A stretch of 64,000 bases of DNA from Anaeramoeba ignava BMAN (taxonomy: Eukaryota; Protista; Anaeramoebae): assembly GCA_028826165.1 (NCBI GenBank), contig JAPDFW010000141.1:56901-120900 (forward strand), given 5' to 3'. A program made the translations under genes and the position numbers. Position 1 is the stretch's first letter. Each line of letters opens with the position of its first letter. Shown piece by piece: positions 34,130 to 64,000 of this stretch. The notes beneath the pieces are model-generated. The model did not search any database. It saw only the letters and a list, made by a program, of their open reading frames with translations, and had not been told where the DNA came from.

Positions 34130-34469
34130 GTAAGTTTTTAATTAATTAATTAATTTATTTTTTTTTTCAAAATATTATTTTTATTGATTTTATAAGAAGA
34201 TATTTCATTTCCATTTTTAAATAAACATAAACATAAACAAAAACAATATTTTTATTTCAATTATTTTATTAATTAAAACAAAACAATTTTGAATTTTTTT
34301 TTAAAATTAATAAGAATATAATCAAAAAAAAAGAAATAAATTTTAATTATAATTTTAATTATAATTTTTATTCCAAAAAAAAATCAAAATAATATTAATA
34401 TTTATTATTTGATTATTATATTTCAATTTATTTTAATCAAAAAAAAATAAATTCAATTTCAAATTCAAT

Positions 34470-34605
34470 TTAATATTCAATTATTTCGGCTGAGGGCTCG
34501 CAATTGTATTTTCTTAATAAAATTTAATTAGAAAATAAAAGAAAATTTGTTTTTGTCTTTTTCGATTTCTTGAGGTCATTTCGGCCAACTTTCGGCTATC
34601 TATCA
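34470..34605. mobile_element. Diverged terminus related to the end of the Sola-like element
   Basis: TCAAT-TA-TTTCGG-N11-CAATTG and GATTTCTTGAG match TCAAT-G-TTTCGG-N11-CAATTG...GATTTCTTGAG at 59332-59381. Several TTTCGG motifs are present. Confidence 0.45.
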
Positions 34606-39265: not shown

Positions 39266-42200
39266 ATTTATTTTTCTTTCGTTTTTCAAAATTTTTTTGG
39301 AAAATGATCAAATGAGGAAATCTGTTTATTTTTGCAGATTCCCCCTTTATGTCTTTAAATTTCATTATAAGATTAATTGATAATTATGGTCAATATGAAA
39401 GAACTAATCAAGAACACTTCCTTGTTGAAGAACCTCGAAAAGCTGCAAAAGAGAGAAGGAGAGCGATCCGAAATGGAACTAAGATTTCAATTTCAATTTC
39501 AATTTCAAATCATTTTAAGAGAATTATTAATGGAAAAGTAGACATCTCAAATTCCTAAATCCGATGACTTTAGAGAACTTTTTGAGTAAGACAATCTTGA
39601 ACTTATTGAAGAGGAAAGCGAAGGTGTAAATTTCGACTTAAGAAAAGAAAGAGGAACAGTTAATTTAACAGATAATGAATAATTCGATCAAGAAGAGGTA
39701 ATTCATTGCAAGACACTCGACTCTGAAAATTGGCTCAAACTTCCATTATCTTGAAATTAGACAAAGAAAATAATCTCATTACTAATAAGGAGAAACTGAA
39801 ATATGTTACTGAGGAAATCAAAGGAGCAATCTTCAAAGAATTAAATGATCTTCATAAATCCAAGATAATTGAAGCTGATATCCGTGAATTCTTACTCAAA
39901 TCTACTAACTATACTTACTTGGAAAACGTATTGGGATTATAATACTCTTCCAAAAAGAAATATTCAAGAATTCCAAAATGAGATAATAAAATATATTCAA
40001 GAAAGAAGAATGATCTTTATTTACAAACAAGGAAACCCTGAAGAAATCAAAAACTACAGACCCATTTCAATTAATAACTCAACCGCTAGATTTTTCTTGA
40101 AACGAATCCTTGAGGAAATTGAGCATGTTTGGGAAAAAAATCAATTCAAAACAAATTGGATTTAGAGAAAAAACTTAGACTCAATGATATTGGTATTAGA
40201 ATTAAAGAAAAATATCAATACTTCAATCAATCCATTCGTAGTCTCAATTTACATTGAAAAATGTTTTAATATGGTAGATCACAGAATCATTAGAAAAGTA
40301 ATAAAAAAATTCATAGTAAACATTCATTTGAAAAAATTTCTAATCAATTATTACAAAGGGAATTCATGTGATATCTATAAAGGTGACCTTCTGACTCTGA
40401 TAATTTTTGCAATGGTGAGTCATTTCATTACCATGGAAATTGAACCATATGTAAAATATATCCAAATGTATGTGGATGATCTCATAATTTTAGTGGAAGA
40501 AACAAAAATATTGCATTAGAAAAAATCAAAATAAAACAATCATAAGTAAGAAACTATATAAAATTAAATATCTTGGAATTATACTAGATCCTCGAAAACA
40601 TATTCAACACAATTTTGAAAAAGCAAAAAATAACTTCACAAGATTGAAAAATATAATGAGCCTATTCATAAATAATCACCTAAAAATGAAAATATATAAA
40701 ACAGTAATTATTCCCAAAATCATTTATGGAACAGAAACATTAATATTTACACAAAAGGAATATCACCAAATTGATACATTGATTAATCCACAAATAACTC
40801 AAAATTTAAGGATAAACCGTCATACTCCTGTAAAAATATACAGAAATGAAACAAATACACCAGATTCCAGGACTCAGATAAATATCAGAAAATGGAAACT
40901 AAGGAAAAAATTGGGAGATATAGATAGGGAATATCTTCAAGAATTCTGCATAATAGACTCCAATTTACAAGAAAAAGTATATAAAATTTGGGGAAAAGAA
41001 TATCTAAAATATATCCAAAATTATCTACTAATTCAAAGATTACAAGACATGAAAGAATCAAAAAGCTGGAAAACCAAGGAGTAATTTGAAATAATAAAGG
41101 AAGAACCTAAGTTACTCAAAATGAAACCTTACCTAGAATATTCACAAAGTTCAATAATCCTCAAACTAAGATCATTCACAAACGGATTAAATCGATATAT
41201 CTAAAACATGAAAAATACTTCCAAAATATATCCATATTGTCAAAAAGAAGAAGAAAATCTCAATCACTTTTTATGGGTTTTTGAAGAATATACAATAATA
41301 AGAGAGGAATGAATTGAAAAAATAAAACCAATAAAGAATATAAATACATTGCTGAGAAAAATTGGAATCAAATGAATCTATGAAAAAACATTCAAGTATA
41401 TTAAAGAATATTTACAAATCTGATCCCAATTTACAAGAGAAAATGAGAATGTAAATCAAAATGAAAATGAAAATGAAAATGAAAATCAAAATGAAAATCA
41501 AAATCAAAATCAAAATGAAAATGAAAATGAAATTGAAATTGAAATTGAAAATCAAAATCAAAATCAAAATGAAAATCAAAATGAAATGAAATTGAAATTA
41601 AAATCAAAATGAAAATCAAAATGAAATGAAAGTGAAAATCAAATTGAAAATCAAAATCAAAATCAAAATCAAAATCAAAATCAAAATCAAAATCAAAATC
41701 AAAATCAAAATCAAAATCAAAATGAAAATCAAAATCAAAATGAAAATCAAATTGAAAATGAAAATCAAAATCAAAATCAAAATGAAAATCAAAATCAAAA
41801 ATCAAAATGAAAATCGAAATGAAAATCAAAATCAAATTGAAAAAATCAAAATGAAAATCAAAATGAAAATGAAAATGAAAATGAAAATGAAAATGAAAAT
41901 CAAAAAAAATCAAAATCAAAATCAAAATCAAAATCAAAATGAAAATGAAAATGAAAATCAAAAATCAAAATCAAATGAAAATCAAAATCAAAAATCAAAA
42001 TCAAAATCAATTGAAATGAAAATGAATGAAATGAAAATCAAAATCAAAATCAAAATCAAAATGAAAATCAAAATGAAAATCAAAATCAAAATCAAAATGA
42101 AAATCAAAATCAAAATCAAATGAAAATGAAAATCAAAATGAAAATCAAAATGAAAATCAAAATGAAAATCAAAATCAAAATCAAAATCAAAATCAAAATC

Positions 42201-42877: not shown

Positions 42878-44149
42878 AATTCATAATATTTTGGATTTTC
42901 TCTTTCAATATCAAGATTTTGATACATTTCGATCTTATCATATTCACAAGTTGAACTATTTCTTGAGTTTTGAATTGTTTTTATTAATTTATCATGAGGA
43001 AATATTTGTTTGATTGATCTTATATCAGGTTCTATATTTATTATTTTATTTTCTATTTCTTGGAGTATTGATTCTTGAACTGGGATTTTAATTTTGTCTA
43101 TAAGTTGTTTAAATTCTTTTTCTTTTTCATTATTATTAAATATAATATCTTTTCTAGCTTTTGTTATTCTTTTCACTTCTGTCCAATAATTTGTTCTACT
43201 TTGATTATCTATTTCTATTCCTCTCATGGTTTCTCTCCACCTTTTCCTCAGAGCTTGTTTCCAATCATATTTACTTTTTGAGTCAAATTCTGTTAAATTA
43301 ATTCCAATCTCAGTTTTTGTATTTATATGAATGATACTTCTTTTCTTAAATTTTTCTTTTATATTTTTAATTGTTGAAATATTGAGAATTGATTTCTCAG
43401 ATGAATTTTGTTTTCTTAATTCTTCCATTATCATATCTTGGAATTGTTGTTTTGTTGATTGATAATATTCTTTTCTCTCTTCATTCAATATATTGATTTT
43501 CTGAATTGTAACTATCATTTTATGATCTTAGAGATTCTCTTCTTGATTAATATTTACTGTTTATGATAAAATTTCTCTATTTTGATTTTTGGCGCAGAAA
43601 TTATCAATATTTCTTATTACACTGTTCTCAGTATTAGGTATGATTTGAGTATTAAATCTGAAATGTTTTTCCATTTCTTTGTCTGTTTGATTAAAATCTC
43701 CTAATTTTTCAATGATACTATTTAATTGACTCATCATTTGAGATTGTGTTTCATGTCTCATATAGACTCCAATAATATTTAATTCTCCTATTTTAATTTG
43801 TATAATATCTTTATCTGGATGTTTTATTTCTTGAACATATTTTGATATACATTTTTTGATGATTATTGCTATTCCTCCTTGTGCTATTGTTCCATATCCT
43901 TGTTTCTCAAATGAATGATAATTTTCAAAATATATTCTTTTTCTCAAGTGTGTTTCTTGTATAATATAAATTGTTATTCTTTGTTGGAGGAATATTTTTT
44001 CTAATTTTTGGATCTTTCCTATTTTATTTAATCCATTGATATTGATAGGTGGATATATCTATGAAATTTTTTCTGAAGTTTTTTTTCATCAATAAACAAG
44101 CAAAAAAAAAACAAATCTAAATCATTTTTTTTCTTTTTGAAATTTTAAA

Positions 44150-44860
44150 GTGAGTAAAAGAGAGCAATCATATTGTGTTTGTGGTCATTGGTTTAAGGAT
44201 TATTGGAAGGTACGGGATAAAATATTAATTCCACTTGATTTTGAAAAATATGAATCGCCATTTATATTTCCAGGATGCTACAGAACCAATTATAGAATCG
44301 TAAGTATTATATGGAAAAAATCAGGAAAAGTGAAACAAAATCTAATCAAATGGAAAAAGAAGCAGTAAATAGATTTGGAGAAAAATGGAAAGATAAATTA
44401 TAATTAGACATGTTAATTCATGACAATTATAAAAATATCCAGGTATATTAGCCCAAAGTCTAAGAACAATTAGATGTTTCCTATTATGAAAAGAATATTC
44501 AACAACAAATGGAAAAAGCAGGGAAACAAATTTCATCATCAACTGGAAGGAGACAAACTATTGGGGTATTTACCCAGAGGAATGAAAAGAGTTTGAAAGG
44601 TATATAGAAAATATCTTAAATGATTCTTAGAAAATAATTAGTGAGTATAATTCTAATATTTATCAATTCTTTGTTAGTATCAAAAATAACCACATTCCAA
44701 AACAAATAAATTCTCCTCCCAATCCAAACTTTGCGTCAATATTATAGTACTGGGTCAGGAATTTCCTATTTGGAGAGAATTATGAATGGACAATATGAAT
44801 GAAGAATTCCTCAAGTTTTTTATAATATACCAAAGAGAAAAGATCAAAAGAAACAACATA
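44150..44860 (+). pseudogene. Broken coding-like segment of unknown identity
   Basis: ORF 44150..44368 (CVCGHWFKDYW...) continues in stop-interrupted frames; composition looks coding. Confidence 0.3.
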
Positions 44861-45039
44861 AAAAAATTCTTAAAAATTACAAAAAAACAAAAATCTTATT
44901 AAATGAAAAAAAAAATTAAATAAAAAAATTAAATAAAAGATGGTTTTTTCATTTTCCTTGAGATTTAATTATTTGGATTTGAATAAAAAAAAATTGAATT
45001 AATTCAAATCGAAATCGTAATCATTGAATTAAAAAAAAT

Positions 45040-45365
45040 TAGAAATGAAAATGAAAGTGAAAATGAAAGTGAAAGTGAAAATGAAAGTGAAAATGAAAGT
45101 GAAAGTGAAAATGAAAGTGAAAATCAAAATCAAAATCAAAATCAAATGAGAGTAAAAGTGAAAGTAAAAGTGAAAATGAAAGTAAAAGTAAAAGTAAAAG
45201 TGAAAGTAAAAGTGAAAGTAAAAGTGAAAGTAAAAGTAAAAGTAAAAGTAAAAGTGAAAGTGAAAGTAAAAGTGAAAGTGAAAGTGAAAGTAAAAGTGAA
45301 AGTAAAAGTGAAAATGAAAGTGAAAGTAAAAGTGAAAGTGAAAATCAAAATCAAAATCAAAATCA
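45040..45365. repeat. (AAAGTG/AAAGTA)n microsatellite just 3' of the transposase
   Basis: Visible hexamer array. Confidence 0.9.
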
Positions 45366-45394
45366 AATGAGAAGTCAAAATAATTGGATAAAAA

Positions 45395-48300
45395 TTAATT
45401 ATCTCCTTTATCCATCCCTTTATTGGGGCATTTTCTGGCATCATGAGTAGTGGAACCGCAAATTGAACATCTTCTAGGTTTTCTTTTTTTCATTCTTTTG
45501 AGATCTTCTTTTTGTTCTTCTGAAACTTTTTCAGGAGTACTTGCTCTTTTTTTCTGTTTTTTAGGTTTTTCTTCTGTTTTTTTTGAATTTTTTTTTTGTT
45601 GATATCGTTGATACTGTTGCTTTTGTTTCTTTTGTTTCTTTTGTTGACTTTGTTGACTTTGTTGACTTTGTTGACTTTGTTGGCTTTGTTGACTTTGTTG
45701 GCTTTGTTGGCTTTGTTGAATTTGTTGACTTTGTTGGCTTTGTTGACTTTGTTGAATTTGTTGGCTTTGTTGGCTTTGTTGAATTTGTTGAATTTGTTGG
45801 CTTTGTTGAATTTGTTGACTTTGTTGAATTTGTTGATTTTGTTGACTTTGTTGAATTTGTTGACTTTGTTGGCTTTGTTGAATTTGTTGATTTTGTTGAC
45901 TTTGTTGACTTTGTTGGCTTTGTTGATTTTGTTGCTTTTGTTGGCTTTGTTGAGTTTGTTGTTTGGCTTGTGGATCATTACTTGTATTAGGGTTAATTTC
46001 CTGTTGATTAGAAGGAATAGATGTTTCAATATTAGGTGGTTTTCCCTTTTGACTAGAATTAACTGGATAATGATATTGATTTGTATTATCAATAAGGTTG
46101 ATATTCTGATTCAAAAAATGATTTTTGTTATCATTAGTTCTATCAATTACATCATTCGTGCGATCTTTTTCATTATGACTATATGAGTAAACCTCAAATG
46201 ATTCCATTTCAATTTTGTTTTCATTGTTTTCATTTGTGTTTTCATTGTTTTCATTTGTGTTTTCATTGTTTTCATTTGTGTTTTCATTTGTGTTTTCATT
46301 TGTGTTTTCATTTGTGTTTTCATTTAAAAAATCGTTTTGGTTATAAATTTCGATTGATTCGTTGCTACTTTCTGTCTTCTTATCTCGTCTTGTATTGAAT
46401 GAGTGCTCGTTTGAAAATTCTATCTGTGGAGTTATTTTTTCTTCTAATACACCTAAAGGCCGTTGCTTGACTTGACATGTTTGCGTATTGTGGTCATATA
46501 AGATACCTTGAAGAGGTTTGATAATATCCAGTTTGAAACAAGTTAGCTCAGACACCAAATTAATATAATTTTGCGCTTTAGTATTGGCTAACGAATTTAA
46601 AAATTCAATAAGTGTTTTTAGTTCTAGAATGGACTCATTATACTGTTTCTTCATACGTGAAATGACCCCAAAATGTGAGTCGCAAATACTTTTTCCATGA
46701 TAACGGGTAAAGTATTTGATATTGATATCATAGTTTTCCCCAAATAATCGAAGGATTAATGCCACAACGGGATTATTCTTTATATGTCTCCCATTGTCGG
46801 ACCAGAATGAGATTGTTGTCACTTGAGGAGGAATCTCAATTAATTTCTTTAATTGAAGAAGGCAATTAATTGGATAAAACAAGTTTTGATCGCTATTCTC
46901 AATTACAAAATCATAATATCTTATGGTTGTCTTATGAAAGATTGTGGAAAAATTGAGTAAATTCCATTGTTTATATTTGAAATATTCTTTTTTCATTTCT
47001 GTTTTATGATAGCTTCTAATTTTGGAGGCGAAATCCATCACAACCACAAGTGTATAAGGATTGTCAATATCTGCATCATAATCATTTTTAATTTCATGTA
47101 TTAGTTCATCATGTTCTCTCTGATTAATAGGTTTCCCCTTCTGTTCAGCATTCCAACAAATGGGGCACTGACAATAACATTGTGTAGAAGATCTGATTAC
47201 AAAGTGCTTGTTTAAAATTTTATCAAAATTTTTGTATGAAATGTTTGTCTCATAGAAATATTTGAACCTCTCCCACAATTGAAGAATTGATAATTCTGTT
47301 GAAAATGTTCTTTTCTTTTTTGCTCTCGTATTTTCTGTGGTATAAGCCTTCAACAGTTCTGTGATTTCTTTTACAAGTGCAATATATATTGTATTTTTTG
47401 TAACTATTTTGTTCACTCTTTTTACTTGATTTTGTTTGCGTAATTTTTTTTCTTTCTTTTTTTTCTTGTTATTTTGATGCAACTCTGTCTGAATATGTTT
47501 TGTCAATTTAGATTTGGATCGGATTGTCAGAAATTTGTTACACTTCGTACACAAGATTTGGTCGTCAACAATTTTGAAACTTTTTTTTTGTGAAATTATT
47601 TGCTTTAAGGTCGATGATATATTTGCATTTCCATAATATCGTATGCATTCCATTTTTATAAAATTTTCTTCTTTTTTTACTTTATTTTCTTTAACAAAAC
47701 ATAGGAATTGATTGTAACAAAATTCTGAATCTATTTTTACTTTTTTATTATTAATAAAATAATAAGCTATAAGTTTTTTTTCTTTTCCAAAAACTTGTTT
47801 AAGATTTTGCTCAAATTCTTGGAATTTATGTGGTATTTTAAATGCTGAAAAATCATCTTGAAAGGAAATGCCCACTTCTAAAGATATAGGATCTGCTCTG
47901 TTTTGAGATGGATTTATTAATAAATTTTGAAATAAATTTAGTAATAAATTTTGAAATAGTTGTTCGTTTTGATTTTGATTTTGAATTTGAATTTGATTTT
48001 GATTTTGATTTTGATTTTGATTTTGATTTTGATTTTGATTTTGATTTTGATTTTGATTTTGATTTTGATTTTGATTTTGATTTTGATTTTGATTTTGATT
48101 TTGATTTTGATTTTGATTTTTATTTTGATTTTGAATTTGAATTTGATTTTGATTTTGATTTTGAAATTTAAATGGAAATTCGAGTTCATTGTGATTTTCT
48201 TTTTCACTTTCAAATGAATTTGGAAAGAGAAGTGGAGGCTCATTTTGGAATTTAAATGATTCCAATTGATTTTGATTGTCATTTTCACTTTCATCTTCAC

Positions 48301-48901
48301 TTTCATCCCTGAATAAATCTACTGATCGAGATTTATTTTCAATTTCATTTTCATTTTCATTTTCATTTTCATTTTCAAAAAAATCTGGAAATGAATTTTT
48401 CAATGGAAAATTGCTACGCACCAAATTTTGATTTTGACTTGGAATTCGACTTAGACGCGGGCTTGAAGTTTGAATTTGAATTGTACTTGGGGTTTGGATT
48501 TGAATTGGACTTGGACTTTGAAATGAACTTTGAAATGGACTTTGAAATGAACTTTGAAATGGATTTTGAAATGAACTTTGAAATGGACTTTGAAATGGAC
48601 TTTGAAATGGATTTTGATTTAAATTTTGATTTTGATTGAGATTTTGAAATGAATTTTGTAAGAGATCTTGAAATGATTTTTGTATCCAATTTTGGAATTG
48701 ATTCATAACTTGATTTTGATTTTGATTTTGATTTTGATTTTGATTTTGATTTTGATTTTGATTTTGATTTTGATTTTGATTTTGATTTTGATTTTGATTT
48801 TGATTTTGATTTTGATTTGAATTGTGAAATGGATTATGAAATGGATTGTGAAATGGATTTTGATTTAGTTTGTGGTGATAATTTTTGTCGTTTTGATTCA
48901 T
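45395..48901 (-). CDS. Sola-like DDD transposase, intact 1168 aa
   Basis: Candidate catalytic motifs VVMDFAS (~47035), FWSDNGRHIKN (~46800) and YHGKSICDSHFG (~46680). Upstream CYCQCPIC..H motif, C2H2 finger CTKC..KHIQTELH, C-terminal RRCSICGSTTHDARKCP knuckle, and N/Q-rich tracts. Confidence 0.8.
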   Translation of the reverse strand: MNQNDKNYHHKLNQNPFHNPFHNPFHNSNQNQNQNQNQNQNQNQNQNQNQNQNQNQNQNQNQNQVMNQFQNWIQKSFQDLLQNSFQNLNQNQNLNQNPFQSPFQSPFQSSFQNPFQSSFQSPFQSSFQSPSPIQIQTPSTIQIQTSSPRLSRIPSQNQNLVRSNFPLKNSFPDFFENENENENENEIENKSRSVDLFRDESEDESENDNQNQLESFKFQNEPPLLFPNSFESEKENHNELEFPFKFQNQNQNQIQIQNQNKNQNQNQNQNQNQNQNQNQNQNQNQNQNQNQNQNQNQNQNQNQIQIQNQNQNEQLFQNLLLNLFQNLLINPSQNRADPISLEVGISFQDDFSAFKIPHKFQEFEQNLKQVFGKEKKLIAYYFINNKKVKIDSEFCYNQFLCFVKENKVKKEENFIKMECIRYYGNANISSTLKQIISQKKSFKIVDDQILCTKCNKFLTIRSKSKLTKHIQTELHQNNKKKKKEKKLRKQNQVKRVNKIVTKNTIYIALVKEITELLKAYTTENTRAKKKRTFSTELSILQLWERFKYFYETNISYKNFDKILNKHFVIRSSTQCYCQCPICWNAEQKGKPINQREHDELIHEIKNDYDADIDNPYTLVVVMDFASKIRSYHKTEMKKEYFKYKQWNLLNFSTIFHKTTIRYYDFVIENSDQNLFYPINCLLQLKKLIEIPPQVTTISFWSDNGRHIKNNPVVALILRLFGENYDINIKYFTRYHGKSICDSHFGVISRMKKQYNESILELKTLIEFLNSLANTKAQNYINLVSELTCFKLDIIKPLQGILYDHNTQTCQVKQRPLGVLEEKITPQIEFSNEHSFNTRRDKKTESSNESIEIYNQNDFLNENTNENTNENTNENTNENNENTNENNENTNENNENKIEMESFEVYSYSHNEKDRTNDVIDRTNDNKNHFLNQNINLIDNTNQYHYPVNSSQKGKPPNIETSIPSNQQEINPNTSNDPQAKQQTQQSQQKQQNQQSQQSQQSQQNQQIQQSQQSQQIQQSQQNQQIQQSQQIQQSQQIQQIQQSQQSQQIQQSQQSQQSQQIQQSQQSQQSQQSQQSQQSQQSQQSQQKKQKKQKQQYQRYQQKKNSKKTEEKPKKQKKRASTPEKVSEEQKEDLKRMKKRKPRRCSICGSTTHDARKCPNKGMDKGDN

Positions 48902-49364
48902 TTGTGAAGAAATTAAAAAAAAATTTTTAAAATTTAAAATTAAAAAAAAATGAAAAATGAAAAAGAATTTATTTTTGCTTTTGTTTTGCTTTTTGATTCA
49001 TGTTAAAAATTTTTTTTTTTTAAAAAAATACTCCAATAACTTGTTTTAAATTGCTTCCTTTGAGTAGGGATTAACTTTAATGTTTTTGATCTCTTTGGAA
49101 TATTTTTTTTATTTTTTTTTTTCATTTTTTTTTTCATTTTTCATTTTTTTTTTCATTTTTCTTTTAGAGAGAACAAGAAGAAATAAAAACAATATCTCCA
49201 TAAGTATTAATGAGTTCTTGTGATTGTCTGTTGATATTTTGAATTAATTTCCATTTTCATATATTTTCGCTCGATTATGAAAAGATTTTTTTTCCTTCCT
49301 TGGATGTTTTGTGCTTTTGGATTGATTTCAAAAAGTATCATTTAAGATTCCAACAATAACAATG

Positions 49365-50545
49365 AAATAAAATTGGAATAAAATTAAAATTGAAATGAAA
49401 TAAAATTAAAATAAAATTGAAATAAAATAAAATTGAAATAAAATTAAAATAAAATTGAAATAAAATTGAAATAAAATTGAAATAAAATTAAAATAAAATT
49501 AAAATAAAATTAAAATTGAAATAAAATTAAAATAAAATTGAAATAAAATTGAAATTAAAAAAAATTAAAATAAAATTGAAATAAAATTAAAATAAAATTA
49601 AATTAAAATTAAAATAAAATTAAATTAAAATAAAATTAAAATAAAAATAAAATTAAAATTAAAATAAAAATAAAATAAAATAAAAAAATAAAATTGAAAT
49701 AAAATTAAAATAAAATTAAAATAAAATTGAAATAAAATTGGAATTAAATTGAAATAAAATTGAAATAGAATTAAAATAAAATTGGAATTAAAATTGGAAT
49801 TAAATTGGAATTAAAATTGAATTAAAAAATTAAAATTGGAAAATTGAAATGGAATTAAATTGAATTAAATGAAATTAAATTAATTAAAATGGAAAAATTA
49901 AAATAAAATAAAATAAAATAAAATTAAAATTGAAAAATTAAAAAAAATAAAATAAAATTGAAATAAAAATTGAAATAAAAATTAAAAAATTAAAAAATTG
50001 AAATAAAATTAAAAAATAAAATTGAAATAAAATTAAAATTAAAATAAAATAAAAAATAAAATTAAAAAAAAAATTAAAAATAAAATTGAAATTAAATTGA
50101 ATTAAATTGGAATTAAATTGGAATTAAATTGAATTGGAATTGAAATAAAATAAAATTAAATTGAAATAAAATTGAAATAAAATTGAAAAAATAAAAAAAA
50201 AATTGAAATAAAATTGAAATTAAAATAAAATTAAATTGAAATAAAATTAAATTGGAATTAAATTGAAATAAAATTGAAATAAAATTGGAAATAAAATTGG
50301 AATTAAATTGGAATTGGAATTAAATTGAATTGGAATTAAATTTAAAATTGAAATAAATTGAAATAAAATTGGAATTAAATTGAAATAAAATTAAAATAAA
50401 ATTGAAATAAAATTGGAATTAAATTGGAATTAAATTGGAATTAAATTGGAATTAAATTGGAATTAAATTGGAATTAAATTGGAATTGGAATTGAAATTAA
50501 ATTGGAATTAAATTGGAATTAAATTGGAATTAAATTGGAATGAAA
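49365..50545. repeat. Subterminal arrays (GAAATAAAATT)n and (GGAATTAAATT)n within the Sola-like element
   Basis: Visible arrays; the inverted counterpart lies at 60120-61925. Confidence 0.9.
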
Positions 50546-51344
50546 ATGATTCTAGGTAGAAAATGAAAAAATAGATAATTTTTGGATTTTTGATGTTAAT
50601 GATAAAGAACAGAATTTGTAGATACTATTTCGCAAATGTTTAATATAATTATTTTAAAAACTTGGTAAGTTTATCATAATCCTAAAATGTTAAAATGGAT
50701 AATGATTGGTTTCAAATCAATGATAAGGAAAAAATATGAAAAACAAGAAAAAAAAGATGAAAAAAGAAATTTTATCAAAATGAATGGAATGAAAAAAAAA
50801 CAATTTGTTTGGAAATTCATTCACAAAAATGGATTTTCAATTTAAATTAAAATAAAAAATAAAAAACTAAATAACTAAATAACAATGAAAAATCATTTTT
50901 GGGTTTTATAAAAATAAAGAATTAAAAGAAAAAAATTTCTAAAAATTAATTTAAATTTAAATGCAAATTAAATCGGGTTTATCCCTGAAAAAATGACTGC
51001 AAAATAATTAACAAAAAAAATAAAAAATTGTAAATTTTGAAAAAAAAAAAAAGAAAAATATCATTTGTAAATTGTTGTTTGATTAAAAATAAAAAGATAA
51101 TCTTTCTTTGGATAATGTAAATAAAAAGAAAAAAGCAAAATCTTTATAAAAATAGAATAAATTGATAACCAAAAATTAATGAAAATTCATGCAATTTTTT
51201 TATTCAAAAAAGATGAGTAATGTGTGTGATAAATTAATCAATTTGATTTCGGTTGACGTAAGGGTCAAAAAGGCTCATTTCGGCTCAAGAAATCCTGCTT
51301 GTGCCAATTGAGATAAAAGAACCGAAACATTGAGCGATTTACTC

Positions 51345-52365
51345 ATATTTATATTTATATTTATATTTATATTTATATTTATATTTATATTTATATTTAT
51401 ATTTATATTTATATTTATATTTATATTTATATTTATATTTATAATTATATTTATATTTATATTTATATTTATATTTATATTTATATTTATATTTATATTT
51501 ATATTTATATTTATATTTATATTTATATTTATATTTATATTTATATTTATAATTATATTTATATTTATATTTATATTTATATTTTATAATTATATTTATA
51601 TTTATATTTATATTTAGATTTATATTTATATTTATATTTATATTTTATATTTATATTTATATTTATATTTATATTTTATATTTTATATTTATATTTTATA
51701 TTTTTATTTTATATTTATATTTATATTTATAATTATATTTATATTTTATATTTATATTTATATTTATATATTTATATTTATATTTATATTTTATATTTTT
51801 ATAATTTATATTTTATATTTATATTTATATTTTATATTTATATTTATATTTATGTTTATTTATATTTTATATTTATATTTATATTTATATTTTATATATT
51901 TATATTTATATTTTATATTTATATTTATATTTATATTTATATTTTATATTTATATTTATATTTATATTTATATTTATATTTATATTTATATTTATATTTA
52001 TATTTTTATATTTTTATGTTTATATTTTATATTTATATTTACATTTTTATATTTATATTTATATTTATATTTATATTTATATTTATATTTTATATTTATA
52101 TTTATATTTATATTTTATATTTATATTTATATTTATATTTATATTTATTTTTATATTTATATTTATATTTATGTTTATGTTTATATTTTATATTTATGTT
52201 TATATTTATATTTATGTTTATATTTATATTTATATTTATATTTATATTTATATTTATATTTATATTTATATTTATATTTATATTTATATTTATATTTATA
52301 TTTATATTTATATTTATATTTATATTTATATTTATATTTATATTTATATTTATATTTATATTTAT
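51345..52365. repeat. (TATTTA)n microsatellite abutting the transposon end
   Basis: Hexamer array starting at the first base after ...TTTACTC. Confidence 0.95.
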
Positions 52366-52970
52366 TCTAATAATCAATTTTGTTTTCTTCTTACTTTTTT
52401 TTTAATTAAAAACAAAACAAAAAATTAAATGATTATTTATCTAAATTAAATCATTTTTATTTTTTATTCATTTATTTGATATTTAAGAAATTTTTGTTTT
52501 CTTTTCCTTTTCTTTTCTTTTTGATTTTTTTTTATATATGAATAATAAATGAATAAAATATAAAAATATTTTTTGATTAATTATTTCTCATTTAAATTAT
52601 TTCATTTTTTTTTACTTATAAAAATATTTATCAATAATTTAATTAAATTTAATTTAATCTTTTTTTTCAATTTTAATTTTTAATTTAAATTATTTACTTT
52701 TTTATAATATATAAGTAATAAAAATAATCTTTTTTTTTTTGATTAAAAAAAAATGGAAAATTATAATTAAAAAAAAATATCAAATAAAATTAATATCAAA
52801 TAATAATAACTTATGTATTTAATTATAAATAAAATTTTTTCAATTTTTTCTTTCAATTTAAATTTTATTTTCCAATTTTAAAAACAAAAAAAGTAAAATT
52901 TTTTTATTTCTTTTCATTATCTATTTCTCTTTTTAAAATTAATTAATTAATTTTGTTTTAATATTTTTAC

Positions 52971-55900
52971 ATACTATTTAAATATTATTAACAAATAATT
53001 AAAAAATATTTTTTTTTATTATTATTTCAAAATGTAAATTATTTTTAAATAATAATAATAATCAAATTATTTTTTTAAATAAAAAAAAATTTTAATATTT
53101 TACATCCTATTTTAATTTCAAAATAAAAATTAAATTTTTTTAGTATTAAATTATTATTATTATTAATCTATTTTTTTTACATCCTATTTTTTTAATAATA
53201 ATAAATAATTTTTTCAATTTTTTAAATATAAAAACAAAAATATAATTATAATTATAATTATAATTTTCTTGTTTTGATTTTTGATTTGAAATTTATTTTA
53301 CATTCTTTTTTTTTTAATTTTTTAAATAAAATTATTTAAAATTTTTTTTATTATTAGAGAAAGAGAAAAATATTTAAAATAATAAATAATAAATAAATTT
53401 TGTTTTTATTTTTTAATTTTATTATTTTACTGGCTAAAAAATTTTGTTAATCAAAAAAAAAATTAGTTTTTATTTTGATTTTTGTTTTTGTTTTTAAAAA
53501 TAAAAAAAGGAAAAATTTTAAATATTGAAATGATTAATAAATTAAAATATAAAATAAAAATAAAAGGATTTTATTACTTATTATTATTTATTATTAAATA
53601 ATAATTTTGGAAAAATAATTTATCAAAAACAAAATTATATTTTCTTTTTTTCTTTTTTTCTTTTTATTTTAGATTTGAAAATTTAATTAAAATTAAGAAT
53701 AAAAAATTGAAAAACAAAAGAAAATTTGTTTTTGTTTTTTGTAATTTATATTATTTTTATTATTATTAGGTATTTTAATTAAATTTTATTATTATTATTT
53801 AAATTTAAATAAAAAAGTAAATAAGAAATTATTTATTTCTCAATTTTTATTTTTATCTCTGTAAATATAAATAAATAAATTATTTACATTTCATTTATTA
53901 TTTTTATTATTTTTATTTTTCTTTTAAAAACAAAAAATTGATAATCAAAAAAAAATTAAATAAGATTTTCTTCTTATAAATAATAATAATAATATTTATA
54001 AAGAAAAAGAAATAATTTGATTTTTTATTTTTTTTTGAAAATTTTTGTTTTACTTAAAATATAAATATAGGAGAATTTATGATAATATTTAAAATAAATA
54101 TTTTTTTTTCACATTTCTTAAATTTATTAATAATATTAATAATAATATATTTTTTCTCTTAATTTCTTCTTTTTTTTAAAAAAATAAATCTCTTTTCAAA
54201 TTTGAAAATAAAAGATTTTTTTTTTCTTATTTTTTTTTGAAAGAAAAAGATTAAATTAAATTAGATTAAATTTGGGAAAAAGAAATGAAATTATATTATT
54301 TATTAATTTCTTTTTTTTTATTTATTTTTATTATTATGATTATTTATTAAAATAAATTATTTGAAAATATCTTTATTTGTAATTAATAAATTGATGAAAT
54401 ATTTTTTAAAAAAATTTAATTTGATTATTGTAAATTAAAAATACAAAAGAAAAAAAGAAAAAAAAAAAGAATAATTTAATATTCTTATTCTTTTTTTTTT
54501 CCACAAATTTATTTAAATTTAATAAAAATCTAATTTCAATTTTGTTTTTAAAATTTTTTGTTTTATAAAATAATTTAATTTATTTATATAAAATTTATTA
54601 TTTTCCTTCTTTTCTAAAATAAAAATGAAAGAAATGAAAGAAATGAAAGAAAACTTATTTAGATTTAATTTTTAATTCAATTCTTCTTTTATTTATTTAT
54701 TTTTTAAAAATTTAATTATATTTTTTTTTGGGAAATAATAAATAAATAAAAATAAAAATAAAACAATTTATTTATCCTAATTTAATTTGAAAAAAATTTC
54801 CTTTTTAATTTTAATATTTTTTTTATTTGATTTGATTTGAAAATTTCATTTTTATTTTAATTATTTATAAAAATAAAATTATTCAAAATATTTTATATAT
54901 TTATATATATTCAGAGAAATGTTATTAAATTATAAAACTTCAAAAAAAAAATAATTTATAATAATTTATTGATTTGATAAAGTAAAAAAAAATAAATAAT
55001 TTTATTTTAATTAAAATAAAATGGAATAATATTCATTTTGTTTTTCTTTCAGAATGAAATGATTTAATGATATTTATATATATTTGATTAAATAATAATA
55101 ATTTTATTCTCAAAAAAAAATTGGAGAAAAGAAAATAAAAATAACAAAAAATTTTAATTTTATTTTTATTATTATTTACATGCTATTTTAATTAATAAAA
55201 AAAAAGTAAAGAAAGAAATTATTTAATATTAATAAATTTTTTTGATATTTTTGTTTATTTGTTTTTAAATTAAAATTATAAAGTTAATTCAATTTATTTT
55301 CATTTATCTAACATAAAATAATATAAATAAAATATAAATATAATTATTAATATAAATATTAATTAAATCTAATTTCAAAAAAAAATAATTAATTTGATAA
55401 ATATTTATTTCTTTTTTCTTTTTTTTTTTGGATTATGAATAAATTTAAATTTAAATTAATAATAAATTATTATTGAAATAAAAAAATAAAGAAATAAAAA
55501 AGAAATAAAAGAGTTTTGAATAATTTCTATTTATTTATTTACTATTTTTTTTTTAAAATCAAAATTTGTTTAATTATTAATAATTATTTTTTTGTTTTAT
55601 TTTTTTGTTTTTTAGAATTTAAAGATATTAATTAGAATTAAAAAAAAAGAATAAAAAAGAAATTTGAATAAAAAATCCATTTTTTTCTTGTAAGAGATTT
55701 ATTTTATATTATAAATAAATGAAAAGAAAGAAAAATTCATTTTTTATTTTGAAATTTAAATTTGAAAAAAAAGAAAATAAATTTGATATTTTTATTTTTC
55801 TTTTTCTTATTGGAATTTAAATTAAAACAAAATTTAATAAAGAAAAATTGAATAAAATTTATTTTTTTCCTTTATTATTATTATTATTTTGAATAAAAAT

Positions 55901-56695
55901 TTCAAATAAATACATATTCATTCATCTTATTCTTTTGTTCTTTTTTTTCTTTTTAAATTTATTAAATTTATTAATATTATTTACAAATAAAGAAAATAAT
56001 ATTTATTCCTTAATTCATTTTAATTCATTTTAATTTTTAAAATTGAAATTAAAAATAAAAAATTATGATAAAAATGAAAATAATCAAAAAAATGAAATAA
56101 TAATAAATTATCTTCTTTTTTTTTAAAAATTTTTACAAAAGAAAAGACAAGATAATAATTTCAAATTCAAAAAATAAAATTGTTTTCTTTTCTTTTCCAA
56201 TTTAATTTAATTTAATTTTAATTTTAATTTTAAGAATTATTTTGTAAAACTTGTTGTTTTTTTTTTGAAAGAAAAAATAAAAAAATTTAAATATAAAAGA
56301 GAAAAGAAAATATTTAAAAAAAAATATAATTCAAATCTTTCTTTTTACATATTTAAATTTTATAAAATAATATCTAATAAATTTTTATTATTTAATTTTT
56401 ATTATTAATATTTTACAGGCTATTTTATTTAATTTTATTTATTATTCAAAAAAAAAGTTTTAGAAAAAAATTCAAAAATTTTTTGTTTTTAATTTCATAA
56501 ATTTTGTTTTCCAAATTAAAAATAAAATGGAAAATTAAATTATTAAATAAAATTTACCACCTATTATTATTATTATTATTATTAGATTTATTTTTAAAAA
56601 TAAAATTTTATTAAAATAAAAAACAATTTAAATTTAAAAAAAATATAATTTTGATTATTATTATTATTTTATTTTTTTTTGGAAATAATTACTCT
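52971..56695 (-). other. Chain of nine candidate 3-nt microexons
   Basis: Minus-strand (t/a)ag|NNN|gtaa at 56693 AGA, 56558 GTG, 56417 CCT, 55180 CAT, 53431 CCA, 53302 AAT, 53181 GAT, 53104 GAT and 52971 TAT. Neighbours within each cluster are 74-138 nt apart. Confidence 0.7.
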
Positions 56696-57399
56696 CTATT
56701 ATTTTTTATTTAAATAAATAAATAATTATTATTATTATTTTGAATAAAGAAAATTAAATTTAAATTTGATTTATTTAATAAAATTGGAAAGAAAAAGAAA
56801 AAGGAAAATAATTTAAATTTTCATTTCAAAAATAAATCAATCAATTATTTTATTTTTCTTTATTTAAATTTGATTTAATATTAAAATAATAATAATAATA
56901 TATTTATTTTTTCTAAGTAAATTTATTAAATAATTTATTCATTTTATTAATCTTGGGAAAAAAAGAAAGAATAAAAATTTTGTTTTGTTTGTTTTTGAAA
57001 ATAAAAATAATCCAAAATTAAATGTAAAATATAGATAATAAAAATATAAATTTTGTTTTTTTTAATTTTTTTATGTGTGTGATTTTTGAAAAAAAAGAAA
57101 AATTAAATAAAACTAATTTTCATTTAATTTCCATTTTCATTTTTCATTATCAAAAACAATAGCAAATAAATTTTATTTTTGAATTGAATTGAATTTAATT
57201 TAAATTTTTTTTTGTTTGGAAAAAAAAAGAAAAGAATAAAATTTTAATTTCTGAATTTAATGTTAATCTTTTGTTAAATAAAAATGAAGTGAATTAAATT
57301 TTGATTTGAATAGAAATAAAATTTTTGTTTATTTTATAAATATTTTTATTTGGAAGAAAGTATATATATATATATATATTGTTATTATTATGTTAAATG

Positions 57400-59250
57400 A
57401 GTCTCAATTTATTGAAAAAAAAGAAAGAAAATTTTTTTCATTTCTTTGAATAAAATATACATGTGGAAACTCAAATTTCCTATATTAAATTTATTTTCAA
57501 ACACAAAAAAAAACAAAAATGAAATCAAAAAAAAGAAATCAATAAAATTTTCATCTTTCCAAAAAAAAAATTAAATTATTAAGAAGAAATAGAAATTATA
57601 ATAATTTTTTATTTCAAAAATATTTTGAGATCTTAGTTCAAAATATATAATGAAAAATATTAATCAAATTATTATAATTTGGATAAAATATTTTATTTGA
57701 TGAAAGAGATTAGTTTTTCTTGATAATCCTCAATTATTAAATTTGTTTTCTTTTAGAAAAAAATTTCAATATCTAAATTGAAAAATTTTATATAAAAAAA
57801 TTCTAATTTATTAACTAATGTAAAACTTAATATAGATCATTTAATTTTTATTTAATTATTTTTTTTTAGATTTTTTTTAGATCAGGATAATAAGAGATTT
57901 ATTGATTTTTTTTTAAGAAAGAGATCATTTTATTAAATTAAATAATATTTTATAATAATCAAAAAAAAATCAATTTTCATCTTTTGTTTTTTTTCTTTGT
58001 TATTTAGATAATTAATAATTTACAAAAAAAAATTAAAGAAATGATATCTTCTTTTCTGAATAAAATTGATGAATTTATTACAGATATTTCCCTTTATAAT
58101 ATTCATAATTTGGATATTTATTTGATTAAAAATTATTTCATTTTAAGAAGTTTATTATTTTTTTTTCAATTCTTATAGGTAAATTTTTTAGTTTAATTAA
58201 TATTCATTTTTTAACTGAAAATCAATTTGAGAAAATAACTGTAGATATTGGAAAAGAAATTTTAATAACTTTTGAATATAATTTAAATTACAATAGAAAA
58301 GATAAGGAATTATTTGAAAAGTTGTATTTTTTTTTCAATAATTTAATAATAATTTATTTAGAAATGGATTTGATGAATATTCAATTACAAATTATTTGTG
58401 ATTTATCAAGAAAAGGTTTCAATATAATAAAATTAATAATAATTTTTGAATATATAAAAACTGGAAAAAACAATAATTTTTTTTTGATTCAATTCATATT
58501 TTGAGGAAAGAATATTTTAAAGGAATAAATAAGAATATAAAGAATAAATCAATAATTTTACATCTAAATGGAAAGACAAAATATCAATTTCTTTAATTGT
58601 TAATGATAAGGATAGAAACTCAATTCAATCATTATTAGATATTTAATTCAAATGTAAATTTAAACTGGATATAAATCATTATATTGAGAAATTTAAAAAG
58701 AGGTTTATAAATAAAAATGATTAAATTTTTTTATGTTTACAGAAAATTATATCATCTCTTTATTCTTGAGTCTTTATACTGTTTAAATAAATATTATTAT
58801 AACTCTCTTAAATTTAAAAACAAATTTTTTTTAACATCATTTATTATCATTATATATATTTAGAATATGAGAAGTGTTTTTTCTATACAAAATATTTTTA
58901 ATCTCAATAAAAATTGATTATAAAATAACTAAAGAAATAATAACTGAAAATAGAATTTGATTTGATTCTTGAAGATTTTTCCATTTTTTTTTGTGTAATA
59001 ATTTATCAATAAACTCTTGTAAAGAAAAAAATATTTTTTTTTTCATTATAAAACAATATTTTTGTCAAATATAATTAATTCACCAAAACAATTCAAATTT
59101 CAATTTATAATAATTATTTTCAAAAAGGGAAAAAAAAACCAAATGAAAAATTGAAGTTTTATAAAAAATGAATTTTATTGTATTACAAGAGAGAAACCAA
59201 AAAAAATGTATAAAATTTGAAAAAAAAAAACAAAAACAAAAACAAAATTT
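57400..59250 (+). pseudogene. AT-eroded coding/transposable-element relic
   Basis: Higher-complexity stretch with broken frames (58322..58504); identity uncertain. Confidence 0.3.
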
Positions 59251-59320
59251 TACAAGAATAAATTTTTTTTGAAATAATTTTTTTTTTGTTTAGTTTTGAA
59301 GTTTTCAATAAAAAAAATAT

Positions 59321-62300
59321 GAGTAAATCGCTCAATGTTTCGGTTCTTTTATCTCAATTGGCACAAGCAGGATTTCTTGAGCCGAAATGAGCCTTTTTGA
59401 CCCTTACGTCAACCGAAATCAAATTGATTAATTTATCACACACATTACTCATCTTTTTTGAATAAAAAAATTGCATGAATTTTCATTAATTTTTGGTTAT
59501 CAATTTATTCTATTTTTATAAAGATTTTGCTTTTTTCTTTTTATTTACATTATCCAAAGAAAGATTATCTTTTTATTTTTAATCAAACAATAATTTACAA
59601 ATGATATTTTTCTTTTTTTTTTTTTCAAAATTTACAATTTTTTATTTTTTTTGTTAATTATTTTGCAGTCATTTTTCAGGGATAAACCCGATTTAATTTG
59701 CATTTAAATTTAAATTAATTTTTAGAAATTTTTCTTTTAATTCTTTATTTTTATAAACCCAAAATGATTTTTCATTGTTATTTAGTTATTTAGTTTTTAT
59801 TTTTATTTTAATTTAAATTGAAAAATCCATTTTTGTGAATGAATTTCCAAACAAATTGTTTTTTTTTCATTCCATTCATTTTGATAAAATTTCTTTTTTC
59901 ATCTTTTTTTTCTTGTTTTTCATATTTTTTCCTTATCATTGATTTGAAACCAATCATTATCCATTTTAACATTTTAGGATTATGATAAACTTACCAAGTT
60001 TTTAAAATAATTATATTAAACATTTGCGAAATAGTATCCACAAATTCTGTTCTTTATCATTAACATCAAAAATCCAAAAATTATCTATTTTTTCATTTTC
60101 TACCTAGAATCATTTTCATTCCAATTTAATTCCAATTTAATTCCAATTCCAATTCCAATTTAATTTCAATTTAATTCCAATTTAACTCCAATTCAATTCC
60201 AATTTAATTCCAATTTAATTCCAATTTAATTCCAATTTAATTCCAATTTAATTCCAATTTAATTCCAATTCCAATTCCAATTTAATTCCAATTTTATTTT
60301 AATTTTATTTCAATTTTATTTTAATTTTATTTCAATTTTATTTCAATTTTATTCCAATTCAATTTCAATTCAATTTTATTTCAATTTTATTTTAATTTTA
60401 TTTTAATTTTATTTCAATTTAATTCCAATTTCAATTTAATTCCAATTTCAATTTAATTTTATTTCAATTTTATTTCAATTTTATTTCAATTTTATTCCAA
60501 TTTAATTTTAATTTTATTTTAATTTTATTTTAATTTTATTTTAATTTTATTCCAATTTTATTTCAATTTAATTCAAATTTAATTCCAATTTAATTCCAAT
60601 CCAATTCCAATTTAATTCAAATTTAATTCCAATTCAATTCCAATTTAATTCCAATTTAATTCCAATTTAATTCCAATTTAATTCCAATTTAATTCCAATT
60701 CAATTCCAATTTAATTCCAATTTAATTCCAATTCCAATTCAATTCCAATTTTATTTCAATTTAATTCCAATTCAATTCCAATTTAATTCCAATTTAATTC
60801 CAATTCAATTCCAATTTAATTCCAATTTTATTTTAATTTTATTTTAATTTTATTTCAATTTTATTTTAATTTTATTTTAATTTTATTTTAATTTTATTTT
60901 AATTTTATTCCAATTTTATTTTAATTTAATTCAAATTTAATTCCAATTTAATTCCAATTCAATTCCAATTTAATTCCAATTTAATTCCAATTTAATTCCA
61001 ATTTAATTTCAATTTAATTCCAATTCCAATTTAATTCCAATTTAATTTCAATTCTAATTCCAATTCAATTCCAATTCCAATTCAAATTTAATTACAATTA
61101 TAATTCCAATTCAATTCCAATTTAATTCCAATTTAATTCCAATTTAATTCCAATTTAATTCCAATTTAATTCCAATTCCAATTTAATTCCAATTTAATTC
61201 CAATTTAATTCCAATTTAATTTCAATTCAATTCCAATTTAATTCCAATTTAATTTCAATTTAATTCCAATTTAATTCCAATTTTATTCCAATTTAATTCC
61301 AATTTAATTCCAATCCAATTCCAATTTAATTTCAATTTTATTTTAATTTAATTCCAATTTAATTCTTATTCAATTCCAATTTAATTTCAATTTTATTTCA
61401 ATTTAATTTCAATTTTATTTTAATTTTATTTTAATTTTATTTTAATTTTATTTTAATTTTATTTTAATTTTATTTTTATTTTAATTTATTTTTAATTTAA
61501 TTTTATTTCAATTTTATTTCTATTTTATTTTAATTTTATTTTAATTTTATTTTAATTTTATTTCAATTTTATTTTAATTTTATTTCAATTTTATTTCAAT
61601 TTTAATTTCAATTTTATTTTAATTTTATTTCAATTTTATTTCAATTTTATTTCAATTTTATTTCAATTTTTAATTTTATTTCAATTTTATTTTAATTTTA
61701 TTTCAATTTCAATTTTATTTCAATTTTATTTTTAATTTTATTTCAATTTTTATTTCAATTTTATTTCAATTTATTTTATTTCAATTTTATTTTAGTTTTT
61801 ATTTTAATTTTTTAATTTTTTCAATTTTATTTCATTGTTAATTTTATTTCAATTTTTATTTTAAATTCAATTTTTATTTCAATTTTTTTTTTATTTTTTA
61901 TTTTAATTTTATTTCCAATTTTATTTCATTGTTATTGTTGGAATCTTAAATGATACTTTTTGAAATCAATCAAAAGCACAAAACATCCAAGGAAGGAAAA
62001 ATCTTTTCATAATCGAGCGAAAATATATGAAAATGGAAATTAATTCAAAATATCAACAGACAATCACAAGAACTCATTAATACTTATGGAGATATTGTTT
62101 TTATTTCTTCTTGTTCTCTCTAAAAGAAAAAAAATGAAAAAAAAATGAAAAATGAAAAATTTAAATAAAAAAATAAAAAAAATATTCCAAAGAGATCAAA
62201 AACATTAAAGTTAATCCCTACTCAAAGGAAGCAATTTAAAACAAGTTATTGGAGTATTTTTTTAAAAAAAAAAAAATTTTTTTAACATGAATCAAAAAGC

Positions 62301-64000
62301 AAAACAAAAGCAAAAATAAATTCTTTTTCATTTTTCATTTTTTTTTAATTTTAAATTTTAAAAATTTTTTTTTAATTTTAAATTTTAAAAATTTTTTTTT
62401 AATTTCTTCACAAATGAATCAAAACGACAAAAATTATCACCACAAACTAAATCAAAATCCATTTCACAATCCATTTCATAATCCATTTCACAATTCAAAT
62501 CAAAATCAAAATCAAAATCAAAATCAAAATCAAAATCAAAATTCAAATCAAAATCAAAATCAAAATCAAAATCAAGTTATGAATCAATTCCAAAATTGGA
62601 TACAAAAATCATTTCAAGATCTCTTACAAAATTCATTTCAAAATCTCAATCAAAATCAAAATTTAAATCAAAATCCATTTCAAAGTTCATTTCAAAGTCC
62701 ATTTCAAAGTTCATTTCAAAGTCCAAGTCCAATTCAAATCCAAACCCCAAGTACAATTCAAATTCAAACTTCAAGCCCGCGTCTAAGTCGAATTCCAAGT
62801 CAAAATCAAAATTTGGTGCGTAGCAATTTTCCATTGAAAAATTCATTTCCAGATTTTTTTGAAAATGAAAATGAAAATGAAAATGAAATTGAAATTGAAA
62901 ATAAATCTCGATCAGTAGATTTATTCAGGGATGAAAGTGAAAATGAAAGTGAAAATGACAATCAAAATCAATTGGAATCATTTAAATTCCAAAATGAGCC
63001 TCCACTTCTCTTTCCAAATTCATTTGAAAGTGAAAAAGAAAATCACAATGAACTCGAATTTCCATTTAAATTTCAAAATCAAAATCAAAAATCAAATTCA
63101 AATTCAAAAATCAAAAATTTAAAAATCAAAAATCAAAATCAAAATCAAAAATCAAAAATCAAAATCAAAATCAAAATCAAAATTTAAATTTAAATCAAAA
63201 ATCAAAATCAAAATCAAAATCAAAATCAAAATCAAAATCAAAAATCAAAAATCAAATTCAAATTCAAAAATCAAAAATCAAAACGAACAACTATTTCAAA
63301 ATTTATTACTAAATTTATTTCAAAATTTATTAATAAATCCATCTCAAAAACAGAGCAGATCTATATCTTTTAAGTGGGCATTTCCTTTCAAGATGATTTT
63401 CAGCATTTAAAATACCCATAAATTCAAGAATTTGAGCAAAATCTTAAACAAGTTTTTGGAAAAGAAAAACTTATAACTTATTATTTTATTAATAATAAAA
63501 AGTAAAAATAGATTCAAATTTTGTTACAATCAATTCCTATGTTTTGTTAAAGAAAATAAAGTAAAAAGAAGGAAATTTTATAAAAATGGAATGCATACGA
63601 TATTATGGAAATGCAAATATATCATCGACCTTAAAGCAAATAATTTCACAAAAAGTTTCAAAATTGTTGACGACCAAATCTTCTTGTGTACGAAGTGTAA
63701 CAAATTTCTGACAATCCGATCCAAATCTAAATTGACAAAACATATTCAGACAGAGTTGCATCAAAATAACAAGAAAAAGAAAGAAAAATTATACAAACAA
63801 AATCAAGTAAAAAGAGTGAACAAAATAGTTACAAAAATACAATATATATTGCACTTGTAAAAAGAAATCGACAGAACTGTTGAAGGCTTATACCACAGAA
63901 AATACGAGGCAAAAAGAAAAAAACATTTTTCAACAAATTATCAATTCTTCAATTGTGGGAAAGGTTCAAATATTTCTATGAGACAAACATTTCATACAAA
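59321..64000 (+). mobile_element. Sola-like DNA transposon copy 2 (runs off the window)
   Basis: Starts atat|GAGTAAATCGCTCAATGTTTCGG; reverse complement of 51344 to about 47240. Confidence 0.85.
62414..64000 (+). pseudogene. Transposase of copy 2, frameshifted as assembled and truncated by the window edge
   Basis: N-terminus nearly identical to 45395..48901. Many 1-nt indels after about 63090, which may be low-coverage sequencing errors. Confidence 0.75.

Follow-up and report, generated by a model that had tools for sequence, protein, structure and literature searches.

Introduction

The micro-exon genes (MEGs) of flatworms, Schistosoma mansoni among them, possess exons of 3-81 bp (PMC10526429), and ultra-short microexons of 1-15 nt in plants and animals are real, conserved and systematically misannotated (PMC8831610, PMC7821500). 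Here we analyse a chain of nine putative exons, each one codon long, in 64,000 nucleotides of DNA of the protist Anaeramoeba ignava BMAN (assembly GCA_028826165.1, contig JAPDFW010000141.1, positions 56,901 to 120,900 of the forward strand); this whole stretch is hereafter called the window, and coordinates are counted from its first letter. In all probability, the nine sites are one-codon exons of an A. ignava ankyrin-repeat gene family whose copy in the window has been broken by transposons. Established here are the statistics of the motif, the architecture of the family and the splicing of 22 such exons in the mRNA of one paralogue, located on contig C73; we infer that the chain in the window is, or was, spliced in the same manner.

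The A. ignava genes are similar to flatworm MEGs in having many consecutive, frame-preserving tiny exons that are overlooked by gene finders, and MEG products are variable, as are the A. ignava loops among gene copies. The two differ in that the A. ignava exons are uniformly 3 nt long, up to 14 in a row, and lie between ordinary 96-nt ankyrin exons. In MEGs most of the coding sequence resides in microexons, the introns are kilobases long, isoforms arise by exon skipping, and the products are small secreted proteins of parasites, whereas in A. ignava ordinary exons encode the ankyrin cores, most introns measure 54-140 nt, the single transcript includes all 22 microexons, and the products are proteins with ankyrin repeats, made by a free-living anaerobic protist. 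As for the plant and animal microexons, they likewise are real, very short and skipped by annotation, but they occur singly or in pairs per gene, while the A. ignava chains encode whole loops and sites of this kind are in excess by ~3,900. Recursive splice sites (ratchet points) likewise combine an AG with a nearby GT in a long non-coding sequence, where stepwise removal of the intron is conceivable; however, at such sites the AG abuts the GT and nothing is left in the mRNA, whereas the mRNA of the A. ignava paralogue keeps three letters. Introners and other intron-generating transposons also give many short, similar-looking introns close together, but the introns of a given A. ignava chain form no detectable sequence family.

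Full-text searches of the available literature retrieved no paper linking Anaeramoeba with microexons; the nearest systems described are the flatworm MEGs and the isolated microexons of plants and animals. New here are the match of the C73 gene to a transcript, the placement of AT-rich "junk" as a long ankyrin loop, and the hypervariability of the triplets in it.

The Chain of Nine Sites

The window constitutes the end of contig C142 of the A. ignava assembly (42.8 Mb). The published A+T content of the species is 80.65% for the genome overall and 91.86% for introns (PMC11550330), and the composition of the window fits these figures. The first-pass annotation, made from the letters alone, had pointed to nine minus-strand sites at 52971-56695 at which an AG precedes GTAA by exactly 3 nt, and had interpreted them as a gene segment in which each exon contributes a single codon. 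All nine are present where it had located them. In the 5' to 3' order of the minus strand, the candidate exons are AGA (Arg, 56693-56695, aatag/AGA/gtaatt), GTG (Val, 56558-56560, aatag/GTG/gtaaat), CCT (Pro, 56417-56419, aatag/CCT/gtaaaa), CAT (His, 55180-55182, aatag/CAT/gtaaat), CCA (Pro, 53431-53433, tttag/CCA/gtaaaa), AAT (Asn, 53302-53304, aaaag/AAT/gtaaaa), GAT (Asp, 53181-53183, aatag/GAT/gtaaaa), a second GAT (Asp, 53104-53106, aatag/GAT/gtaaaa) and TAT (Tyr, 52971-52973, aatag/TAT/gtaaaa). The intervening putative introns measure 132, 138, 1234, 1746, 126, 118, 74 and 130 nt, the two long ones preceding CAT and CCA, respectively; the six short ones reproduce exactly the gaps given in the first pass. 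Its description of the triplets also proved correct: nine of nine are sense codons, and 10 of their 27 bases are G or C.

The motif WAG-N(k)-GTAA was scanned on both strands of the region 52400-57400 with k from 0 to 15. On the minus strand, WAG stands exactly 3 nt before 9 of the 18 GTAA sites (the earlier count by eye was about 9 of about 19), and there are no matches at any other spacing; on the plus strand, none of the 14 GTAA sites is preceded in this way, and the only match has a spacing of 9. Recursive splice sites were rejected as an interpretation of the chain, as they need a spacing of 0 and the region contains no site with k = 0. Shuffling the region 2000 times with dinucleotides preserved gave on average 0.15 k = 3 sites (sd 0.38, maximum 3) against the nine observed, and the whole window contains 18 such sites against 7.1 +/- 2.2 expected, a number reached in 0 of 100 shuffles. 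The sharp, clustered and co-oriented peak at k = 3 over shuffled controls, by which the first-pass annotation had suggested judging its proposal, is there, and the nine-site pattern is genuine and far beyond what chance would give. Scans of the window for Rfam families and tRNAs gave no match.

Splicing of One-Codon Exons in a Paralogous Gene

The decisive result is the match between a protein designated P0127 and chains of 3-nt exons at another locus of the same genome, G000:C73:176533-178590. P0127 (EukProt EP01156_Anaeramoeba_ignava_P022275, c20457_g1_i1.p2, tagged "ORF type:complete") was found among profile matches, and the format of its header, which is that of a TransDecoder open reading frame (ORF) on a Trinity transcript contig, suggests that it is derived from RNA. 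Genomic exons were compared with this ORF one by one, and 131 of its 131 residues are explained by them, in order. The match comprises three ordinary exons and 14, then 8, consecutive 3-nt exons; each of these exons stands between an AG and a GT, and the introns measure 54-89 nt. First in the match is a 48-nt piece of an ankyrin exon, after which come the 14 triplets TCA, ATG, AAA, CCT, GAT, AAA, GAT, TTT, AGT, GCT, AGT, CCA, AGA and TTT (translated as SMKPDKDFSASPRF), a 96-nt ankyrin exon, the eight triplets GTT, GAT, TCT, GAA, TGG, ATT, AGA and GGA (VDSEWIRG) and a 183-nt last exon. The transcript keeps 22 of the 22 microexons and skips none. Since the exons reproduce P0127 residue by residue, chains of one-codon exons are really spliced in A. 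ignava.

Thus, for the gene family, the match bears out the proposal of a gene segment with one codon per exon. The chain in the window shares with the family its motif, its strand bias and its restriction to sense codons. The first-pass annotation had made its case depend on the occurrence of such triplets in a transcript of the locus or of its paralogues, and in the transcript of the C73 paralogue they do occur. It had offered two versions, constitutive exons or an alternatively spliced pool of codon cassettes; the inclusion of all C73 microexons agrees with the former, and nothing supports the latter. Protein homology searches with P0047 and P0127 as queries returned only the queries themselves and no transcript ORF of the target. 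An AlphaFold model of P0127, calculated without an alignment, was too poor (predicted local distance difference test score, pLDDT, 40) and was not used as evidence.

The expectation that gene finders would miss such exons was also correct, since the examined public gene models of the family skip them; as a consequence, part of the published proteome lacks the loop residues. The public A. ignava models either have a 32-residue repeat period or read into introns. In the models P0002, P0012, P0016, P0020, P0047 and P0074, the 32-aa repeat exons are fused directly or extended by intron read-through (e.g., GVKQ...), and every repeat is devoid of loop residues. The exons of P0074 (KAJ5069235.1) are identical to those on contig C108, which harbors one of the sister copies described below.

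The architecture of the family is as follows. Each repeat core is encoded by a 96-nt exon, and each residue of the inter-repeat loops by a separate 3-nt exon; the introns are short, ~90% A+T, starting with GTAAA(T/A) and ending with (A/T)AG; and the spliceosome would remove every intron singly, presumably by intron definition, joining the codons in genomic order. Read in this way, the chain in the window, R V P H P N D D Y, would form a long loop between the repeat exons WSPVHYLC... and YTPLHDLC.... Splicing of 14 and of 8 such 3-nt exons one after another, confirmed by a transcript, is far past the usual scope of exon- and intron-definition models, the footprint of the factors recognising both splice sites of such an exon being larger than the exon itself, and A. 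ignava is a natural system for studying how the spliceosome handles minimal exons.

Genome-Wide Pattern and Architecture of the Gene Family

The count of spacings over the whole genome, proposed in the first pass, also peaks at k = 3. ATAG-N(k)-GTAAAA occurs 89, 314 and 33 times at k = 2, 3 and 4, respectively, and WAG-N(k)-GTAA occurs 7774 times at k = 3 against 3825 times at k = 4, i.e., with an excess of ~3,900 sites at spacing 3. The A. ignava genome appears to hold thousands of one-codon exons. At C61:320-340k, all 57 k = 3 sites lie on the same strand, and so do all 32 at C20:66-76k. The distances from an AG to the next GTAA on the sense strand of these two loci have peaks at 3 (64 in C61, 32 in C20) and at 96 (13 and 6), whereas the antisense strand has no peak. 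Further WAG-NNN-GTAA clusters in the genome-wide list are located at C1:1179549-1181535 and C1:1324394-1325612.

The 96-nt exons of C61 and C20 encode ankyrin repeats of the type xTPLHYLCxNxSITxEIIKLLIxxGANFNLxx, and 16 of 18 family exons of this length match Pfam Ank_3. Between them, the paralogues carry runs of 3, 7 or more one-codon exons, in frame and each with its own intron of ~60-100 nt. A 32-aa exon together with three codons makes a period of 35 aa, which is also the period of homologues whose repeats are encoded contiguously. Stop codons are absent from all 130 triplets inspected (96 at C61 and C20, 22 at C73 and 12 in the window), whereas ~11% would be expected from base composition; the chance of 0 in 130 is ~1e-7. 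One TGA site exists only in the copy on C108, at a place where the window has no site. The commonest residues encoded by the C61 and C20 triplets are K, N, G, E and D.

Position of the Chain in Its Gene

The chain is carried by an AT-rich segment (~92% A+T) of 7.5 kb, block B (51866-59319, minus strand), of which the genome contains at least five copies. The other copies, on contigs C79, C25, C108 and C42, are ~94-96% identical when indels are counted and 98.4% identical by substitutions only. In the copy on C108, an insertion of ~1.5 kb lies inside block B at a point matching ~54137-54141 of the window; the other copies are free of it. In the window, the upstream part of the same gene unit, block A (28748-34486, plus strand), is oppositely oriented and 17 kb from block B, whereas each of the four other copies has both blocks on one strand, with block A directly upstream at a distance of ~400 nt. 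This collinear arrangement is kept at G000:C79, C108, C25 and C42, with the C25 copy running off the contig end within block B and the C42 copy having a shortened block B. The gene unit as a whole is a near-identical block of at least 13 kb in at least five copies.

Block A contains, on its plus strand, a 3-nt exon GAA (28842-28844) and a 3-nt exon TAT (28953-28955), a pair that recurs in many copies, and a 96-nt ankyrin-repeat exon (34034-34129, plus strand; Ank_3, E = 7e-4) that is nearly invariant among the copies and precedes the chain in the intact ones. Just upstream of it lies the 3-nt exon AAA (33848-33850, plus strand), which reads AAA/AGA/AGA/GAT/GAT in the copies. The first ankyrin-like exon, of the type ETLFHYFSKK..., is at 25255-25350 (plus strand; tblastn E = 5e-8 to a C61 exon).

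Beyond block B, the copies on C79, C108 and C42 continue with the triplets TAT, TAT and GAT, which are followed by the ankyrin exon YTPLHDLC...GADFHIQI; in these three sister copies the chain therefore stands between two same-strand ankyrin exons of the family, and the nine sites account for most of a loop of 12 codons that links two ankyrin repeats. In the compact paralogue at C61, the two repeats most similar to these (MSPIHYLCRN..., then HTPLHDLC...) are separated by a loop of seven microexons, which probably occupies the same position in the gene as the chain in the window, judging from the likeness of the adjoining repeats.

Transposon Damage to the Window Copy

In the window, block B is bracketed by transposon-rich inverted arms. 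The left arm (44000-51355) and the right arm (59310-64000) form the inverted pairs I1-I3, which are 92-94% complementary, and the right one starts exactly at the cut upstream end of block B. At 34486, block A gives way to unrelated repeat DNA; the window lacks the canonical 400-nt junction of A and B, and block B points towards block A, not away from it. Insertion of transposons and a subsequent inversion between the inverted arms would explain this arrangement. Since block B has been cut at both ends and inverted by transposon DNA, the window copy is probably a dead fragment; whatever the state of the sister copies, it is most likely a broken paralogue.

An ORF of 1168 aa in the left arm (45395-48901, minus strand) is rich in N/Q repeats, carries a CCHC zinc knuckle at its C terminus and matches no Pfam family; its sequence occurs a second time, inverted, at 62414-63187 (plus strand), in the ~7 kb arms that bracket block B, and the element carrying it is probably a transposon. 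Both inverted arms also contain long arrays of an 11-nt tandem repeat (AAATTGAAATA-like) at 49285-50300 and 59987-61600.

Variability of the Triplets

Comparison of the five block B copies showed that the triplets differ among them far more often than their surroundings. Pairwise substitutions affect 28% (20/71) of triplet positions, against 1.6% in the introns, 0.8% in the 12-nt flanks and 1.1% in the AG and GT dinucleotides (Fisher p = 2.5e-19 for the triplet excess). AGA is invariant in five copies and the second GAT (53104-53106) in three, while GTG reads GTG/TGG/GTG/TGG/TTG, CCT reads CCT/GCT/GCT/GCT/ATT, CAT reads CAT/AT/TTT/CAT, CCA reads CCA/AAA/CCA, AAT reads AAT/AAT/GAT, the first GAT (53181-53183) reads GAT/AAT/TGG, the AG before its AAT variant being lost by a deletion in C79, and TAT reads TAT/GA/TTT. 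Several of these codons differ in two or three of their letters. Elsewhere in the copies, the 3-nt exons that make up short loops are conserved, and the ankyrin exon at 34034-34129 has 3 differences in 384 nt compared.

Alignment columns bearing G or C are ~10 times more often variable than A/T-only ones, which accounts for part of the triplet excess and is consistent with a strong G/C-to-A/T pressure in the block B repeats. The triplet columns that hold G or C are, however, variable in 79% of cases (11/14), compared with 16.5% of other columns holding G or C and 1.7% of other A/T-only columns, i.e., they are still ~5 times more variable than other G/C-bearing columns. Erosion resembling repeat-induced point mutation (RIP) was therefore dropped as the sole cause. 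The splice-site Gs are variable in 0 of 17 cases.

A conserved framework and conserved splice sites combined with fast-changing loop codons are a pattern that would be expected under selection for loop diversity, and the multi-letter changes would also allow a mechanism replacing whole codons. It is conceivable, although we regard the idea as speculative and rather improbable, that the one-codon exons of long loops form a diversification system. In such a system, each codon would stand alone between the same conserved flanks (AATAG and GTAAA), and one codon could be exchanged while the others stayed intact; codons might be swapped by copying from other microexons, guided by microhomology, or by some different targeted mechanism, and exon skipping might add further variety. 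If this were true, paralogues 98% identical would nevertheless differ at most loop codons, and the system would be nature's equivalent of the designed ankyrin binders whose loop positions are randomised. In any case, the fast turnover of loop codons among near-identical copies raises the question of whether this architecture serves protein diversification.

Alternative Explanations

Several observations weigh against the view that the nine sites are exons of the ankyrin-repeat family that are, or were, spliced like those of C73. The introns of the chain, which measure 74-138 nt except for two of 1.2 and 1.7 kb, are longer than the 54-89 nt of the proven gene. The proof from RNA is a single assembled transcript, and it comes from the C73 paralogue rather than from the target or its sister copies. 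The upstream ankyrin exon of the window (34034-34129) is on the opposite strand, 17 kb from the chain, and the downstream partner exon is absent from the window. Finally, the copy on C79 has two 2-nt triplets and one deleted AG, which may be due to decay or to indel errors of the assembly.

One alternative is that block B and all its sisters are now unspliced pseudogene debris, in which former one-codon exons persist as dead relics and the changes in the triplets are mere decay. We consider this possible, although doubtful. The cutting and inversion of the window copy by transposon DNA would agree with it, as would the kilobase introns, a degraded long interspersed nuclear element (LINE) inside the unit, the 2-nt variants and the lost AG of C79, and the location of the copies near contig ends among repeats. 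Decay alone, however, leaves unexplained the ~5-fold excess of changes in the triplets over other G/C columns, and it does not agree with the better conservation of the ankyrin exon (3/384 nt) and the splice-site Gs (0/17) in comparison with the G/C columns of the introns (16.5%). Judging from this alignment, the conserved exon and splice-site Gs suggest that selection acted after the copies had arisen.

A reading in which the spaces between the sites are filled by copies of a small mobile element, such as a miniature inverted-repeat transposable element (MITE), an introner or a retroposed intron, and the triplets are target-site or junction filler, is highly improbable. The units between the sites do start with GTAAA and end with ATAG, as introns would, the triplets look like variable junction letters, and the whole block is repeated in the genome. 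But the mutual likeness of the units does not rise above that of shuffled controls, being 0.273 against 0.286 +/- 0.014 for the chain in the window and 0.304 against 0.291 +/- 0.012 for the proven chain; moreover, the ends of the units form no inverted repeats, stop codons are missing from the triplets, and the triplets of a paralogous chain are present in a transcript. The first-pass annotation had considered that its proposal would fall if the flanks of the sites aligned as copies of a MITE or other repeat: the 7.5 kb block as a whole is indeed a segmental repeat, but the intron-like units within it are dissimilar to each other. A chance product of base composition, or an artefact of long-read assembly of extremely A+T-rich, low-complexity DNA, can practically be dismissed, given 9 sites against 0.15 in the shuffles, the recurrence of spacing, strand and clustering genome-wide, and the identity of the flanks in five independently assembled copies. 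Transposon excision footprints, ends of Helitrons or internal eliminated sequences (IES), and concatemers of introns formed by template jumps of a reverse transcriptase were likewise considered and dropped.

Other Features of the Window

Fragments of a non-LTR (long terminal repeat) reverse transcriptase are found on both strands at 37533-41084 (RVT_1, E = 1.6e-22; weak zf-RVT), and (TATAAA)n arrays are located at 33190-33460 and 51330-52400. The region 8667-12161 (plus strand) contains an uninterrupted ankyrin-repeat ORF of 1164 aa without one-codon exons. Its G+C content, ~42%, is far above that of the rest of the window and in sharp contrast to the AT-rich split family; the ORF could be a foreign acquisition, belong to a different family, or be symbiont-like. 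Further ankyrin-like matches begin at about 4230.

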